DNA of 64,000 nt, taken from assembly GCF_031769215.1 (NCBI RefSeq), contig NW_026782196.1, forward strand, positions 3,162,001 to 3,226,000. The letters are read 5' to 3'. The DNA is from Ylistrum balloti (taxonomy: Eukaryota). The translations under genes and the position numbers were made by a program. Each line of letters begins with the position of its first letter. The first letter of the stretch is position 1. Positions 1 through 56,600 of the stretch are shown piece by piece. Below the pieces are notes generated by a model. The model was not told the origin of the DNA and ran no database searches. It saw only the letters and a program-made list of their open reading frames with translations.

Positions 1-2187
1 CATAACACAAAATATACACAAATTAATAGCACCTCTAAATAAGAATTAGATACAGTAGAGTCACACAATGAATGAAATTCCATCCTCCACCTTAATTCTG
101 AAACCCAGGAGGCGATATTGGAAAATTAAAACCGACCGAAACAGCCAACAGTCATGGTAGTTATAAGATGTTAACATTGCGGAATTATTTGTTTATTGTG
201 TATCTATCTATCATTATCTATACAGCTGATTTATGAGATTTGGAAGATGTTCATTGTATTTGGTGCATACAGCAAACATATAATTTACTGTTAACCGGAG
301 GAAACATCTATTATTAAAAACTTAATTTTATACCCAAATTATTAGCAAGATTAAACAAAGGAAGATGTTTATTCAGAACAATGTTAAGGATAGTGTTTTG
401 ATACAGGACAATACCTGTGAAGAGTTACACGATACGTAATAAAGGTTTTACATGTGATAAGTATAGCACTGTGTAGGGGTGTTTCTAAATGTATATAGAA
501 TAAGGTTACACGGAGATTTAACATTAATATTTGGAATCACAGTTTGTATATACTGCACTTGGTGTTACGTATATGTTGAGATAATTCCTTTCGTTGTTTG
601 ATTTTGTTGGCATAATCATAAATTTGCTGATAATGCATGTTTAATACATATACATATTTGTAAAATGATAATCAATATGATTCGCATATCATTTATATAG
701 TACATATTTTCATAATATGAAAGATTTTTGCTGAACAGTAGTATGTGTACACACCTGTAACATGTGTGAAATCTTGTTTGCTGTTGAAACCTTGTTCAGA
801 ATCAACTCAGCCATAGCAATACCCTTGTGCAAAGTGACAGGGTATCGCAGTACACGTTAAAATTCCTTACACCAGTGCCATGATAAGCAAATGTCAAAGA
901 AAAATGAGGAATGCGAAACAGCCATGTACCGGGAGTCGTATATACCTTTGTCTTAAGTACGGAAACAAACAGCAACCAAGTAGTACAGTTTAAGTGGCTA
1001 AAATCACCCAATGACAAGACTCACTGGTAATAGCGAGATTTGTATTTTCGAAATAAGCGTGTTTTACGTGCCGCTATCAACTTCCGTAAACAATTTCCAT
1101 TTGTCGTGAGATTGATATGCCCTTGAGTTTACAGGATATTTAAGAAATGACACAGAATTCGACTATCATCACATTATATTCCTACATGGCTGATGAAATA
1201 TTGAATATGAACTGATGATATTAATATCAACAGCTATTTAGATGATTAATTTTATCGATTTTGTGTAATACGTCATTATATTGTGTAAACTTGCACGGAT
1301 TTAACATTCCATGTAGACGTGACGTCACCGCAGGTTGTGATTCCATTTTGCCCTATTCGTTATTTTATACAATATCATAAGTATTCATTTATTTAATCAT
1401 CTTTAGACTGCTTACATACTGAAATGTAGTTTAATGGATAAATGTTAATAGTTTGGGATCATATTAACCAAAAACGGCAATGGAAACATCGCCACTACCG
1501 CGTCACGTGGTCTTGATCGTGACGTCAATAAATTTTACTGTTTGTAATTGTTATTCTGTGATAATGACATCGATGAAGTCCATTTTAGTAACGAAAATGA
1601 GAAAATTTGAAAACGTATTTCATGAAATAGATTCCTGGAATTAATTTCGTAATAGATATGAAGAGCAATGACCATTAATCTAACGAACCTGATGTGTAAC
1701 GAGCAATATACACGCCACTCGAATATTAGTAATAGTCGCACAGCTAATATCCAGTGCTGGCTTATAATTGTGTCAGTGGTAATATGCACAAGGAGCTGTT
1801 GCAAACATATCCCCTCCCTAATGATAGCAACACGACGGAATCTCTGCAACGATCCATGATGGGAAAGTATTTCAATGAACACTCAAAATGCATATTTTCG
1901 GAGTAAGCAACATCTCCTCCACAAATAGGATTGTTACAAAATATCTGTAGCAGAATCAAGATGATGACCTGACGAATTGAATTCTGCTTCCGTCAAACTA
2001 TGATCTGAACGAATACCAAATATAAGGCATATGTTCTCTTTTACCAGCATTACCAGAAACACATCCGTGTGAGAGAGAAGAGAACAAAACTCTAATAAAT
2101 TAGATAGAATATATTAAACTGATGGTAAATCTCCAATGCCGTTTATTACGACAAAATTATCCGAAACTGGAAGCTCAGTACCTCATT

Positions 2188-47647: not shown

Positions 47648-50600
47648 ATGTGTATGGCTGCGCTAAAGAGTTTCAAGACAAAGAGAGACAACTCTAAGCA
47701 AAAACATTTAACTGCCCGCGAGAAAGCAGTTAAAATTAGTAATGGGATGGTCAGTTTTATAAAATTAGAAGTGTATTTTCAATCAAAAGTATATGTTGAT
47801 GGAATCTGATCTCTAAAGCTGATTCAGTAGAATGCATTACACCAATTCGGCGTCATTCACTACACAAGTACATGACATAAAAATTAAATTGCATGATAAA
47901 GATAGCTTACTTTGAAATGTCTTAGGCGTATGGAAATCTGATTGCAGTTTAACGCAGTATAGAATAATTGCACATTTCCTAATATGGAAGGCGGGAACCC
48001 ATCGCAATATATAAAAACTTAAGTGAAATGAAAATAACTACTATGTAAACATGTTATCAATTAGGAAAGCGCAAGACAAGTATCTAGTTAGGCTGATATA
48101 AGGATTTATGGATATAAGGATGATGAAATACTATATCTTGCAATTTTTTATTACATATGGTGAAGGTACAAGAAATAGAACAACCACATTCTCCACTGGA
48201 GAACTTTTTTGTACAAGTGAATCGGGGTATTTATTTTCGTGTCAATTATATCTATTTTACTACACCAACAAAAAATATAATCAGTACTTGAATGAAATTC
48301 CTGTGTTTTTCAAGGTATACATGTCGACAAAGGTGAGTCGCTTTTCGAAGAAGTTGGTTTTTAGTTTTAACATATTTTATTCTCAAGAAAAATACAAGTA
48401 GTATAATTGTTTATGAATTAAACCTTCCGATGGTCTTTATAAATCTGTTTTGTAAATTCAAGCATGCCTGATAATAGACTATCTGAGTTAATTCCATTGT
48501 CTATATTCAAACCTTGAGACATCTCTGACCTCTGGTGTCGATAATTAGGACATTCAAAGAAGAAATGATAGGCGTTTTCACATGGAGAGCCGCAGATACA
48601 GACAGGGTTATCACTAATGTGAACTCTAAATATATCAGTGTACCTAGATTACATGTTTATTTATAGTTGTTAATTGGTATGTATATAGACGTTCATAAAT
48701 ATATATAAAAAAATCATTTCAGTTTTATAGTTTTGATGCTTTACGGCAAAAACCGAAAAACATACCTTTGAATAAACCGCTCTCACATCAAATCGAGGCT
48801 CTATTTGCTCGTGACGTCACAAGGGTAGCATTTGGGACGACCCGCCATGCCAGGTAACTTTCGCGTGTAGACTGTCGAAAATATGTGAAACAGACGTTTG
48901 GTTGTTTAATCTTCATACTTCTCGTCCTGTATTTATATCCTACCATATTTGTGCGTATCAAGTGATATTTATTTTTATTCAAAACGTGCGAAATTCGAAG
49001 TATTAGCTTAACTATGGAAGCGACTCCGACCAACAAACGTTCACGTGGGAAGAGATGTGTAGCGTATGGATGTGGAAACACCACTTTAGACGGTGTTTCA
49101 CTTCATTTTTTCCCATTAGACAGACCGGAAATATGCAAAGTTTGGACTGCATTTGTGCGGAGGAAAAGGGATTTGTGGGACGGGCCAACAAAACATTCAG
49201 TTTTGTGTTCGGAACATTTCGGTGAGGACTGCTACCCGATGCAGTACAGATTTCTTCAATCAATGGGACGTACACCACCGAAAAAGAAAACGCTAATAAA
49301 AGATGCTGTGCCAACGATCAACAAAGGCTGCACCAACGTAGAGGAAACGCCTGTCAAAAGACCACGGACTGCTTTCGCAAAAAGAGAGAACAGAAGGGTA
49401 ATTATTACATAATACATGAAGATCTAGGGCCTATGTATATCATATAAGTTATAGTAGTATCTGAGTAGAAAAGGTAATGAGTAATGCAGCCTTCCTTAGT
49501 GGACAATACTCCTATTTAGCATTTAATAAACCTTTTCCCAGTAAATGTTTCAGTGTATGCGAGGTATCTTCAGTTTTAACTTAAATGTACGTATTAAACA
49601 GCTACACTGTGACTACATGTACATTATTTGTATGATAAATTTGATTTTTTTTTATAGATAGTCGAGCAATGTTTGAAAGAGAGTTCCACGGTATCCACAG
49701 ACACTCAGGTGGAGGAAGATCCTGATGTTTCAGCCAGTGATGAGGTTATGGAATTGCCAGAGGAACATGTACAGACAAGAAATGACCATGATTATTTCTC
49801 CTGCAATTTCAAGGTACTAAAAATGATACTCATAAGGCCAAAAAAATTATATGCGAGTTTACTGTCACCATACCGACCCTAAACTTTTAATTCAGGTTTT
49901 CACACATGCACTGTAAAAGTCAAGGTTGTTGCTCTTATAAAAGTTATGTATAAAACCAGATTTACAGTTATTGCCCTTTATAGTTTTTCTTTGTCCGCAC
50001 CATATTTACAACACTGTTTTACATATATGTAGGAACTCCAAACTTTATGTACAGAATGTTCCATATGTCACAGCAAACTACATGTTTCAAACAACATAAA
50101 TAGTGAAATGGTCTCTGATCTTGTGTGTCAAACATCGCCATGGGCATCTGTTGGGCTCTTGTAAGGTTGGTCAAGGAACATACTTTTTTTCCCACCTTAC
50201 ATATACATAGGTTATGGAGGTTCAACTGTTAATGTACATCATAACTACCGTGTACAAGAAAAGTTTCTATTACAGGAAACACCATCAAAGACAAAAACCT
50301 GTGGCACGCAGCTCTCCCTGAAACCACCCAAGAGGAAAACGGTCAGGATACAAGTGGCCCCCAATGCAGTGGAGAAAGGTAAATTGTAACCTGCTTATGC
50401 ATGTCAATAGGGTCTGTAAGTCTCGTCATGTGACCTGCAAGATTGTGACATTTTGAAAAGTCATAACTGTATGAAAAAATAGAGTATTACCAGTTGGTAC
50501 AATACAGCTGTAAACTGTTTTAAGTACTTGTCCTAATTACAACATTTTAAAATTACTATTCCATTCATTTATTATTTGAATAAATCACAAGACATTTTTA

Positions 50601-53600
50601 CTTGCATTAATGCATTGTGATTTTGTTTTATCTTATAGGATGTCAAACTCGTGCTCCAAGACCAAAGGTGAGACATGCAGAAGTTCAATGTAATCTTCTA
50701 AAGCCAGTGGTGGAGAAAGATGAAGAAACCAACTTGGAAAGTGATAGTGAGTACGAAGATCATCTAGACCTTTTCAAGACCAACAGTAAAGATCTAGACG
50801 ACTCCTATCATCCGGATTCTGGTCCAGACGACTCGGACACAGAGTTAGATATGGAAGAAAATGAGTATGTGTTGTAACATGTCTGACATTTTGCAGAGAA
50901 AAATAATTTATTTTGATACTTTCTGGCTTGTGTTTCGGGACTTTGATATGGCATGCTTTCTCAGTCATATCAATCCATTGTGTGCTAAAACATCATTGCA
51001 TTGCCTTTTTGGATGGCACTTTGATCTAACGGTGTTGTCCCAAGATGGAATAGAACCCTAACCTCAGTCTTGCTTATATCATTTCTCTATAATAATATCA
51101 TGTCATAGTGCCCTCATTCATATTATGGCAATTATGTATGTAGAATGTCATGAACATTTATGTATTGCAGAGATGTGCTACACAGTGGACAGAGCAGAGA
51201 CAGACTCCTCATAATTGAAGAAAGCAAACTGCTTGAACTTTTTGATAAATGTAGACACTGTTTATCACCATGCCAAGGAGAAGTGACACGAATGATCGGT
51301 ACCATGTGTTGTGTGCATCAAGAATGTGACATGTGTGGTAGGACCTTTAAATGGAGAAGCCAGTCAATGGTGGGATCCCTTCCAAGAGGAAATGTCCAGC
51401 TGTCTGCCAGCATTTTATTTTCTGGATCGTTGCCCTCAAAGACTCTAAGAATTTTTAACTTTATGGACATCCCGGTAATATGCCATGACACGTTTTTCAA
51501 GCATCAGCGACATTATTTACAGCCTACAATTCTAAGGATGTGGACAGAAAAACAAGTGCAATATTTTGCAGAAATGTGCAAAAGTGACAATGACATTTGT
51601 ATAGGAGGAGATGGTCGATGCGATACCCCCGGACACTGTGCTAAGTTTTGCAGTTATTCACTGATGGATTTGGACAGAGGGACAGTCGTAGATATACAGT
51701 TAGTTCAGGTTGGTATTTCTAATCGTAAAAATTTAAAAAAAAAAAAAAAAAAAATCCACTCATTATATATTCCACAATTTCTGAGACCAGGCTTAACCAC
51801 TGGACGACTGTGGCCCCCGTTAATTTTATGTAAATTTATATGTAGAAACTGCTGATAGAAAATGTGGTCATGAATACATACAGAAACAATTTCAATATAT
51901 ATATATATATATATCTACAATCTACATGTACTTTCCAGAACATGAGTTATGTTAATTTTGGTACATTGTGTAATGTTAAGATTTTGATCAATTTCAGAGC
52001 AATGAAGTCAAACATAGTGTCAACATGGAAAAGGAAGGGTTAATACGGAGCGTGGACAATCTAAAACGCCATGGGATCAACATAGATACCCTAGTCACCG
52101 ACCGACATGTCCAGATCAGAAAGTGGGTGAGGGAGAACATGACAGAGACCAATCACTGCGTTGATGTATGGCATGTTGCAAAAGGTATTGCATTTTCTTT
52201 AAGTGTTTGTGTTTAGCATAAACAAAACAAGAAGCCCAATCAGTATTAACAGTCACCGTAGTAAATAGTTTGATTTCAGTTTGTTTTGTTTTGCTAAGGG
52301 CTTTACTTCAGATACTTTGTAGACCATGTCCTAAGGACTAAATAAATATCAAATGGAATTAAATGTATGAACACACAACTCAATTTAAAGTATAGAATAA
52401 TTTTTTATGTTAAAATATAATAGGTTTTGTATTAAAATGCATATGAAATATTCTTTAGGTTTGAAGAAGAAGTTGTTGGCACTGTCAAAAGAAAGAGATT
52501 GTGGTGAACTTGAAAGCTGGATAAAAAGTTTAACCAATCACTTATACTGGGTTCCTGCATCAACGCCCTCAGCAGATGGCGCTTTGATGTACCAGAAGTG
52601 GGTTTCTGTAGTAAACCATGTCCAAAATATTCATGATGGTCATGGTGATCTGTTTCCTTGCTGTCTGCATGATGACTTGAGAACACAGGAAAGGAAGAAG
52701 AAATGGATAAAACCAGGTATTTTTCCTGTTATGGCATTGACTCAATTATTGTGTATCCTACCTTTAACTTGCTTACTTATTCATTTGGTTCGAAATTGGT
52801 GACGTATCAATAATTCAAATCATAACTAAATTACGAATGACATTTATCACTTGCTTAAAAACATTTTAAGTGCCTAATTTCTTTAGCAATGACATTTTTC
52901 ACCTGAATGAAAAGCACATCCAGGAAAATGGTATCTTTAGTTTCTTGTTCTTAGCATGGAATTAATATTCGTGTTCTAAATTCCTTATGATCCCATATTA
53001 TATTTTTACTTCATCATTTGAAATCCTCACTTTCACTTTTCAGAGAGTAAAGTAATGGAGAAGCTAGAACTGATGTTGACATCACCACAAATGAAAAAGG
53101 ACATTCCCATGCTATCAACACATCACCAAACTTCAGAACTAGAAGGGTACCACTCAACAGTTAACCAGTTTGCCCCTAAAATGCATGGCTTTTCATTCAA
53201 TGGAATGTTGTGCAGGTATATGATCACATGATTCTCATAAGACTATTATTTCTTTAGACATCAATTTGTACAGACAAGTTGATCGTATATGTATATCTGT
53301 CTCAAGATCTAACATCATCAACAGGTTTTGGAAATATCATTATTCACTAGTAGTCTACCTGTCTCAAAACTCCTGTGGTGAATATTGCAATGTTAAAAGA
53401 GATTTAGTGTTGTAGCTAGATGTAAGATATGTTAAAATGAGTATGTAAAAGATTTAGGCAGCCAGTCTTAATTCTTAAGATATTGATGATACTTAATCAG
53501 GAAAGTTTAAATATTGTTGCATCTCTTTGAATAGGGTGATTCTAGCTGCACTTCACCACAATGAAAATGTGAGAAGAGAACAAGCCATGACATCTGCTGG

Positions 53601-56600
53601 GGAGAAAATGTTTAAGATAATCTACCCTAAACAGAAGAAAGGTGGATACACTGTCAGAAAAGTCAAAACAAAACAAACATTTGGTAAGTATTATGTTGCA
53701 TATGAAGACGAGTTCAATATTTTAGGTTAGGTTCAGTATTCTATATATTGCAGTACATGATTCTTCAATTAACAACTTGCATTTTAGTTGCAGGAAAATA
53801 TGTCCATGTATACAAAACATTTAAAGTCTTTACTAGCAATAATGTCAGATTTTGTGTAATAGTGATTGGAAAAAATAATATAACCAGTGTACTTGTATAT
53901 GTACTTTTTATCTTACAGACTATGTACATGAACTGATGGCAGAAGTGCTACAAGTGGCAGAAAAAAGTACGATGCAAGTGGAGGATATGCTACTTAAAGA
54001 CCAACCCCCACCACTCTGTAGTGATTTTGTCAGACCTGTAAAAATGGAAGCTGTCGCATTGATGGAATCAAGATTTAACTTGAACATTTAAAATACATAC
54101 ATGTACATGAATTTTCATCTTTTTTTTATATGGTCTGCAAGTCTGTTTTACTTTACTTCTGTGTACCAACTGACGTTTTAGGTAGTAGTCTTATAGAAGA
54201 AAAGTATTTTCAATTTCGACAAAATGCACATTTCCCAAGGAGTTTTTAAAAACGTACCTACTGGTAATCCTCCGTTTTCATAGTTATGATTGTTCAAGTT
54301 AAGTGGTATGTTCTAGTAGGTCACATGACGAGACTTACAGATCCTATTACAGTTTCAAGTGTATATATGAATAAAAAACAACAATCAGATATCAATTATA
54401 ATTTTATTGTTTCATGTCATTCTTTCAATGTTTTCAACACATATTTTTAATGCACAAAATTAAAACCTTTAAAATTTCCATTTGGTGCAGGAAATGTTTC
54501 TCTAATAATCTTCACAGCACACGCAGGTAATGGCACTCTTATGCTTTTTCCCAAGTACCCCCAACACCATCTCACAAATTGTCTGTATGCTGTATAGCGG
54601 TATCTCCTGATAAAACAAGAACAATATATTCTGTAATCATTGTTAATGCCAAGTTTGCCATTAATCTGCGGAGGATGCAAGCACTAGTGAATTATGGTAA
54701 ACACAAGTAACTCTACAATACATATGTGTAACAATTCCAAACCAGATTTTCAGAAATGTTGACTTATTATTGAAAATCTATTTTATCTTGTCTGGTTATT
54801 GGTTCTTTTGCAGTATTTTAGACCTGTAACTTGATAGACAAGTTTGTAACATCATTTTTAAAATATCTTCTTAACAAATGAATTATTTTATTATGTTTCA
54901 AGTTTTATAATAATAAATTTGATGCTGTAGATAAACATCATAACTTACTCAGGGCATTCTGGTATCTCTCCATGAAGTTGTCTGTACTGGAAATAAGATG
55001 TTCTCAGCACATAAATATCCAAACAGACTGGCCCAAATCCAGGATGGTCTGTTATGCACTGTATCCCTGGTATGTCGTCTTTTGTGTTCAGTACACTGTG
55101 TATCTCACTACAGCACCTGCACTCCTCAATGGTAGGCATAAGACTGCAGTTACCGCAAAGACACCTGTAACATATAAAATTTTCTGTGTTTTATACATAA
55201 TTCACTAGTATGTTGGTGTGAAAATACCTTTAAAATGTCTTGTTAGAAGTTTTCTATTCAACACTTTATAGTACATACCAGTACCATTTGACATAGCAAA
55301 AGAATACACTTTGTTTCCAGGAAATGTTCTCCTTTGTAAAAAGAAATGCTATGCACATTAATTTATGTAACACAAAATATTTAGGGGTGGGTATTATGTA
55401 AAAGTCAAATAATTGTAAATGCAAAAAAAAGGCATTGGCTGTTATTATCTCGACAAAGTCGGACTTGTGAGGTTGAGCAAGTGGAGAAAAAATCCTGAAA
55501 ATCCGCATTTGTTAACATGCACGATGCATTTTGAAAAGGGAAAATTCCTGGAAAAAAAATAATCATACGTGAAAGCTAACATCTCTGAACATACCAGTCT
55601 AAGGATCCCAGGCGATCAGCATTATCATCGCTACGTGTAGACGACGCAGGTGAAGATGGACTGCTTTCACCATCTACCTCGGGTTCAAATTGGTATGGTT
55701 GAATACCAGCTTGTCTCTCTATAACCTCCGTGTCGTAATCAGAAGATTCAAAGCTTAAATTCAGGCTGCATTCTTCCGAATTGTTTGAGTCTTCGAACCA
55801 CTCGCACTCGCTGTTATCACTGTCCGACATTATCATTTCTTAGACCAAGCGCTACCCTTGTGACGTCACGGGATTTTCCGGTCTGTTAACCGGAAGTTGG
55901 GAAGTGTGTTAATTAGCCTCCATCGACAGGTGCAAACCGGTTCCGAACGGTGAATTTAACGACAAATATCTCAAAAACTAAGCGACAAATTTTGACCGGG
56001 TTTCCGATTTTTTTAATAAGAAAGGAAACATAATTAATATTAATTAATACTATACCGTAATCTAGGTACACTAGGTGAATTACAGTTATACCGTATTTTT
56101 TGTTATGAATAATGTTTAGTTTGCGCTCAACATATCCAGTGTAACTGGGGGAAAATATCTTTTGATTTCGTGAAATGGAGTTTTTAAATTTTCTGCAAGT
56201 TGTTGACGATCTAGCAGCAGCATCAAGTTTAATCCAAGAACAAAGAGCAGCAAGAAGAAAGGATGAATTAATAGAGGAAAGTCAGAAATTTGGTAAGATA
56301 AAATCGTTGGCATTTCTTAATTATTATTCTGGGAAATAGTAGAGACACCTAACAGATAAGGAAATTGAGAATGAAACATTATTCAGGGAAATAGTAGAGA
56401 CACCTAACAGATAAGGAAAGTTGGAATGAAACATTATTCTGGGAAACAGTAGAGACACCTAACAGATAAGGAAAGTGAGAATGAAACATTATTCAGGGAA
56501 ATAGTAGAGACACCTAACAGATCAGGAAAGCTGGAATGAAACATTATTCTGGGAAATAGTAGAGACACCTAACAGATAAGGAAAGTGAGAATGAAACATT

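Follow-up and report, generated by a model that had tools for sequence, protein, structure and literature searches.

Within a 64,000-nucleotide stretch of the Ylistrum balloti genome (contig NW_026782196.1, positions 3,162,001 to 3,226,000; hereafter the window) lies a 7,436-bp element, at positions 48637-56072, that is very probably a Kolobok DNA transposon of the Kol0 lineage, present as a complete copy and belonging to a very young family of low copy number. The element has the same base composition as its surroundings, ~35% G+C, and contains no N, the 137 N of the window all falling in other parts. Its two ends are 16-bp terminal inverted repeats (TIRs), the left one opening with AGTGTACC, and the termini read 5'-AG...CT-3'. 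Between them sit two convergent genes, a transposase gene and a gene for a second protein, KolX, which together comprise 13 exons separated by canonical GT-AG introns. The frames of both genes were judged exon by exon, from exon lengths, phases and split codons. The features of the element are as follows.

48637-48652, plus strand: left TIR, 16 bp, AGTGTACCTAGATTAC, beginning 5'-AG; this terminus occurs at 10 loci in the genome
48811-48829, plus strand: twin motif, copy 1, 19 bp, with a cAMP-response element (CRE) core (TGACGTCA), lying before the transposase gene, 175 bp in from the left end
49014-54091, plus strand: transposase gene, 10 exons, 2,346 nt, 781 codons
49014-49397, 49658-49813, 50276-50378, 50639-50864 and 51171-51708, plus strand: transposase exons 1-5, with AG and GT borders
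51998-52184, 52459-52716, 53044-53215, 53535-53683 and 53919-54091, plus strand: transposase exons 6-10, with AG and GT borders
50033-50149, plus strand: optional extra exon, 39 codons, placed after exon 2; it keeps the phase only if a weak donor, GTTGGG, at 50149 is used
Exons 5-8, plus strand: DDE core, with candidate residues D at 51610, D at 52100, DVWH at 52163-52174, zinc-finger C/H at 52662/52668 and E at 53142
50406-50500, no strand assigned: internal inverted repeat, arm 1, in intron 3, partner of 54254-54348
54254-54348, no strand assigned: internal inverted repeat, arm 2, between the stop codons of the two genes
54447-55836, minus strand: KolX gene, 3 exons, 618 nt, 205 codons, in frame
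55595-55836, minus strand: KolX exon 1, acidic tail
54949-55164, minus strand: KolX exon 2, Cys-rich half
54447-54606, minus strand: KolX exon 3, C-terminal half of the ballast domain
55851-55869, minus strand: twin motif, copy 2, 203 bp inside the right end and 15 nt upstream of the KolX ATG
56057-56072, plus strand: right TIR, 16 bp, finishing CT-3', the exact reverse complement of the left

The original prediction, made from the sequence of the window, had described an intact, intron-rich two-gene Kolobok element, and what it said of the frames, the motifs and the ends was confirmed. The 10 + 3 exons assemble without a stop or frameshift, with consistent borders and phases and no stop created at a split codon, and the TIRs are indeed perfect. 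Exon 1 of the transposase encodes a full THAP domain (~49056-49322; Pfam E = 8.4e-15, model positions 1-87), in which the C2CH residues C15, C20, C65 and H68 and the AVPTI motif are all present. The motifs of the DDE region are likewise intact. Searching with exon 5 by words returned unnamed fragments only; an exhaustive search with the largest exon returned 3,265 cluster representatives at E ≤ 0.001. The best homologue is XP_021356047.1 from the scallop Mizuhopecten yessoensis, on which exons 5-10 map head to tail at residues 69-243, 244-305, 307-391, 394-448, 450-498 and 500-552. The gaps between these blocks, of one residue at three junctions and two residues at one, coincide with split codons, and the same exon order was found on long homologues from various animals, fish included; two of these homologues were called on contigs of ~3 kb. 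The splice model is therefore supported by head-to-tail mapping onto annotated or uninterrupted homologues. The linker that holds the optional exon is covered by no homologue in this mapping. A longer form of that exon (50033-50160), which would use a strong donor, GTAAGG, was rejected because it breaks the frame.

An alignment of 11 long homologues contains 34 invariant columns, including those of GDGR, TDRH, DxWH, a C..H pair and E..H. The exons in the window match 33 of these, and the one that deviates is a Cys, as it also is in the published Kolobok-1_BF (Kojima and Bao 2022, PMC9587614). The acidic residues D (GDGR) and D (TDRH), the DVWH signature and the E of LEGYH all stand at invariant columns. 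Exon 7 has a His/Cys cluster, in which C68 and H70 are near-invariant; it is a predicted zinc finger lying between DxxH and E. A sequence profile of the core gave no match among solved structures. A structure model of the core of the closest homologue (of the homologue and not of the protein in the window) has a mean predicted local distance difference test score (pLDDT) of 81.6 and a predicted template-modelling score (pTM) of 0.77. The model is nearest to ISCth4 of the IS256 family, followed by the P-element and Hermes transposases and retroviral integrases. On this modelling the transposase core is predicted to be an RNase-H-fold DDE enzyme. The P-element transposase and ISCth4 (6P5A, 6XGX) share that core, and the P transposase also starts with a THAP domain, but identity is ~11-12%, TM-scores are 0.3-0.45 and the target duplications are different. 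Other Pfam matches in the exons (DUF678, DUF7276, DUF2321, TFIID_20kDa and DUF5086) were far under the cut-off and were taken as noise.

The second gene was said to encode a Cys-rich domain resembling the cytoplasmic ballast of P2X7, and this proved correct. KolX exon 3 matches the Pfam family P2RX7_C (E = 2.3e-9) and P2X7 chains in the PDB (E = 0.005). The Cys-rich exon 2 gave no match in Pfam; aligned by hhalign to a profile built from Pfam-verified paralogues in this genome, it scored a probability of 91% and E = 9e-7. Matches of this exon to calcineurin and a sperm microtubule protein, found with phmmer in the PDB, were dismissed as chance. The cysteines fall as CxCxxC, CC and C in exon 2 with one more in the C-terminal exon, giving seven, the pattern of the P2X7 ballast and of zebrafish Nanor, and each stands where Figure S6 of Kojima and Bao 2022 (PMC9587614) shows it for KolX and P2X7. 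KolX also keeps equivalents of R546, A549, Y550, F553, P570, C572, R578 and F581-P582 of P2X7. It differs in being a protein by itself rather than the tail of a channel, and in having a PYQFEP motif and, at the N-terminus, an acidic tail. In rat P2X7 the residues that contact guanosine diphosphate (GDP) are R546, H547, R574, R578 and K583 (Rump et al. 2020). Of these KolX has equivalents of R546 and R578 only, in addition to Y550, with H547, R574 and K583 replaced by Y, V and A. Invertebrate ballast domains show the same partial pattern at the GDP site, and a ballast-like domain was earlier described from oyster and limpet (Rump et al. 2020). Genome-wide we counted at least 48 P2RX7_C matches, several of them in single intron-less open frames (for example C200:967100-967477).

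Kolobok elements are defined by TTAA duplications, 5'-RR...YY-3' termini and a DDD/E transposase in which a zinc finger comes after the C/DxxH signature (Kojima and Bao 2022, PMC9587614). This finger, between C/DxxH and the catalytic E, occurs in all Kolobok lineages but Kolobok1 and is absent from MuDR, P and hAT, which have the C/DxxH signature in common with Kolobok (PMC9587614). The Kol0 lineage is set apart by KolX, a second protein with the P2X7 ballast fold, two zinc ions and seven conserved Cys (PMC9587614). In the element described here, TTAA duplications were found at the level of the family, though neither in the window copy nor in the other complete copy, on contig C698. The termini are of the RR...YY type, unlike those of piggyBac, both in this family and in a second family described below; the acidic residues and the zinc finger are in place by sequence; and the second gene is recognisable as KolX from the exon-wise P2RX7_C, P2X7-chain and hhalign matches together with the seven Cys. 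The TTAA sites, the AG...CT termini, the D/D/DxxH/zinc-finger/E motifs and KolX together place the element in the Kol0 lineage of Kolobok, so the predicted Kolobok identity stands. The view that canonical Kolobok elements pair a transposase with KolX applies to the Kol0 lineage and not to Kolobok generally, as only Kol0 carries KolX. In common with Kolobok-1_XT, Kolobok-2_DR and Kolobok-1_BF (Kapitonov and Jurka; Kojima and Bao 2022, PMC9587614) the element has TTAA, 5'-RR...YY-3' termini, a THAP-DDE transposase with GDGR.D.PGH, TDRH, DVWH, zinc finger and LE..H block, and KolX. It differs in its host, a bivalve, where the Kol0 hosts named in that paper are vertebrates, annelids, cnidarians and sponges, with molluscs given for Kolobok generally (PMC9587614). 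Further differences are the division of the genes into 10 and 3 exons and the missing duplication at the window copy. The type of element has thus already been described, and it is not a new kind.

A census of the 648.5-Mb assembly recovered 10 left and 9 right termini of the family. The young copies are 99.5-99.9% identical to the window copy. TTAA flanks 15 of the 19 ends (8 of 10 left, 7 of 9 right), the exceptions being the four ends of the window copy and of the copy on C698 (G000:C698:771742-779191, L002). These two are the complete copies, and both open reading frames (ORFs) are intact in each. Two copies with internal deletions, C331 and C566, retain both ends and have TTAA at each; a further copy, C185, is cut by the end of its contig, another, C578, is 5'-truncated, and the remainder include several one-ended fragments. 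The deletion junctions show microhomology of 0-1 nt. The KolX protein is identical across the young copies that hold the whole gene, except for a one-codon deletion in C807, and deletion copies that lack the transposase core still carry an identical KolX. Older relatives, 93-95% identical, are truncated and contain stops; measured against them, the transposase has a ratio of nonsynonymous to synonymous substitution rates (dN/dS) of ~0.3.

From these sequences the family is judged to have moved recently, and given the 99.5-99.9% identity, the different TTAA sites, the two copies with both ORFs and the deletion derivatives, it is reasonable to regard it as possibly active. The original prediction had called the window copy possibly active and had proposed a genome-wide check of copy identity. 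That check, reported above, upholds the claim for the family; the window copy lacks a duplication, which leaves its own mobility uncertain.

The junctions of the window copy read tatc on the left and aggt on the right. The element sits in an older interspersed repeat, which covers 48385-48636 and 56075-56322 and has dozens of paralogues of 68-87% identity. At the point of insertion these paralogues read ...ATAATTAAGTGAAC..., and the window lacks ~6-8 of those bases. At five empty paralogous sites of the host repeat the ~6-8 extra bases, including TTAA, lie exactly at the junction. This points to entry at TTAA followed by loss of the duplications, or to capture with a small target deletion, and one of these two courses is the probable history of the window copy; by the same comparison ~6-8 bp of target appear to have been lost. 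At C698 the TTAA is missing on both sides and the first 4 nt differ from the TIR. The sequences flanking C698 occur only once in the genome and bear no relation to those around the window copy; a common flanking sequence was considered and rejected, the hexamer AGGTGA found in both being attributable to chance.

It is possible, then, that the window copy is intact in sequence but immobile, having entered in a non-canonical way or changed later (by end-joining capture, or by erosion of both duplications), and that at most it now supplies transposase and KolX from a fixed position. We regard this as a serious alternative, if somewhat the less probable one. It would account for the flanks, for the extra bases at the five empty sites and for the state of C698, with its altered terminal nucleotides, when every other end in the family has TTAA. 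Against it, both TIRs of the window copy are perfect, and Kolobok excision may not need a flanking TTAA. In addition, the host-repeat paralogues compared are only 72-82% identical, which makes the inferred target approximate, and only two copies are concerned.

Other assignments were weighed against a Kol0 transposon. A piggyBac-superfamily element would share the TTAA duplication, and a few piggyBac families carry a KolX-like gene (PMC9587614). The transposase, however, is unrelated: no piggyBac transposase domain was found by Pfam in any exon or in six long homologues, the DxxH signature is present and the core matches Kol0 blocks. The AG...CT termini differ too, and KolX here has all seven Cys, most of which are missing from the piggyBac-borne versions (PMC9587614). 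We consider the probability of a piggyBac origin to be negligible. An element of MULE/MuDR or P type is very improbable, if a little less remote. The core exons do give matches to Mutator (PF20700) and MULE (PF10551), at 17-21 bits against cut-offs of 26.5-27.6; the six full-length homologues carry THAP and the "Mutator-like" PF20700, in some of them above the cut-off, and nothing else relevant; and the nearest solved folds are those of ISCth4 and of the THAP-bearing P-element transposase. Such matches are expected for a Kolobok element because Kolobok, MuDR, P and hAT share C/DxxH. Target duplications of MuDR and P elements are 8-10 bp, in contrast to the 4-bp TTAA of this family, whose TIRs are short. 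Also against this assignment are KolX, a marker of Kol0, and the presence, between DxxH and E, of a zinc finger that MuDR, P and hAT lack (PMC9587614). A domesticated pair of host genes might be suggested by the two intact ORFs, and relatives of KolX have been domesticated elsewhere, in the P2X7 C-terminus and Nanor (PMC9587614). About ten loci with identical termini at unrelated TTAA sites are not what domestication predicts, nor are deletion derivatives and older decayed copies with stops; copies at different TTAA sites rule out a single domesticated copy, and we give this explanation virtually no weight.

Several points nevertheless weigh against a young Kol0 element as we read it. Pfam holds no Kolobok model, and the exons themselves reach Mutator and MULE only below the cut-off. 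The motif blocks match those of Kolobok-2_DR, Kolobok-1_BF and Kolobok-1_XT in the published alignment (Data S5, PMC9587614), but this likeness to named references was judged by eye. Neither of the two complete copies has a TTAA duplication, and the window copy has three private amino-acid changes. A search of the haploid-looking assembly for empty-site alleles or paralogous sites of C698, C566 and C331 found none. Finally, the dN/dS of KolX against the older subfamily, 0.25-0.5, is based on 5-6 substitutions only. The Kol0 reading keeps our strong confidence with these points taken into account.

The genome also contains a second young Kol0 family, with copies at G000:C157 ~241823-249760 (L043, L045) and G000:C475 (L044). 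The element is ~7.9 kb long and complete, with both genes, a TIR of 15 bp, termini 5'-AG...CT-3' and a TTAA at either side; identity between the two copies is 99.8%. Its proteins are 39-71% identical in amino acids to the exons in the window, and its genes likewise converge and are broken into exons at the same points. In both families KolX exon 1 (L043:1075-1305 in the second) codes for a strongly acidic stretch, and the two have in common PYQFEP and, just ahead of the Cys-rich domain, ADR[LI]G..DW.

The twin motif is present in the window in two exact copies, where 0.01 would be expected, in inverted orientation, and it holds the CRE palindrome. A near-identical twin motif stands at the same two places in the second family. 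Its retention in so diverged a relative argues for a functional motif; most likely, judging from its positions, it is a promoter element common to both genes, the alternative being a THAP-binding site. The motif is a further difference from the described Kol0 elements, no mention of it being found in the portions of PMC9587614 used here. Within 48847-48859, 12 nt past the left copy, an ATG is followed immediately by a GT donor (GTAACT, at 48854), and the short upstream frame meets a stop. The interval from this donor to the AG at 49006-49007 could be an intron in the 5' untranslated region.

One further observation concerns the interior of the element. Transposase exons 4-10 lie between the arms of the internal inverted repeat, which is ~95 bp long with a match of 77-92%. 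Every copy has this repeat (self-match 77%), and elsewhere in the genome it is not high-copy.

A plausible mechanism can be put together from these parts. The THAP zinc finger of the transposase would bind sequence near the ends of the element, and the RNase-H-fold DDE core would excise it and insert it at TTAA, duplicating the TTAA. The CRE-containing motif upstream of each gene would most likely act as the promoter element for both. KolX would be a ballast domain that stands alone, binds zinc and bears an acidic tail, and our best guess is that it assists or regulates the transposase as a partner encoded by the element. The window copy could supply both proteins and, with no target-site duplication, may itself be hard to mobilise.

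A more specific role for KolX can be imagined, although we think it unlikely. The P transposase binds GTP through a domain of its own, whereas here the possible nucleotide-binding domain is a separate protein. KolX might thus be a guanine-nucleotide- and zinc-binding cofactor, the counterpart in trans of the cis GTP-binding domain of the P transposase, that gates synapsis or target capture. Compatible with this idea are the intact KolX of young copies, its retention in deletion derivatives, its identical exon structure in the second family, where identity is only ~50%, and the equivalents of R546, Y550 and R578.

The ballast domain of P2X7 and zebrafish Nanor are both likely to descend from KolX (Kojima and Bao 2022, PMC9587614). 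The original prediction saw in a complete copy a tractable system for testing what KolX does. That part holds, as useful material rather than as a discovery, the type being one already described. The genome offers two young Kol0 families with intact gene pairs, the TTAA-flanked deletion derivatives could be used as ready-made mini-elements, and the conserved motif is a candidate promoter or binding site. Otherwise an ordinary member of a described lineage, the element would in this way let one ask whether the transposase needs KolX.

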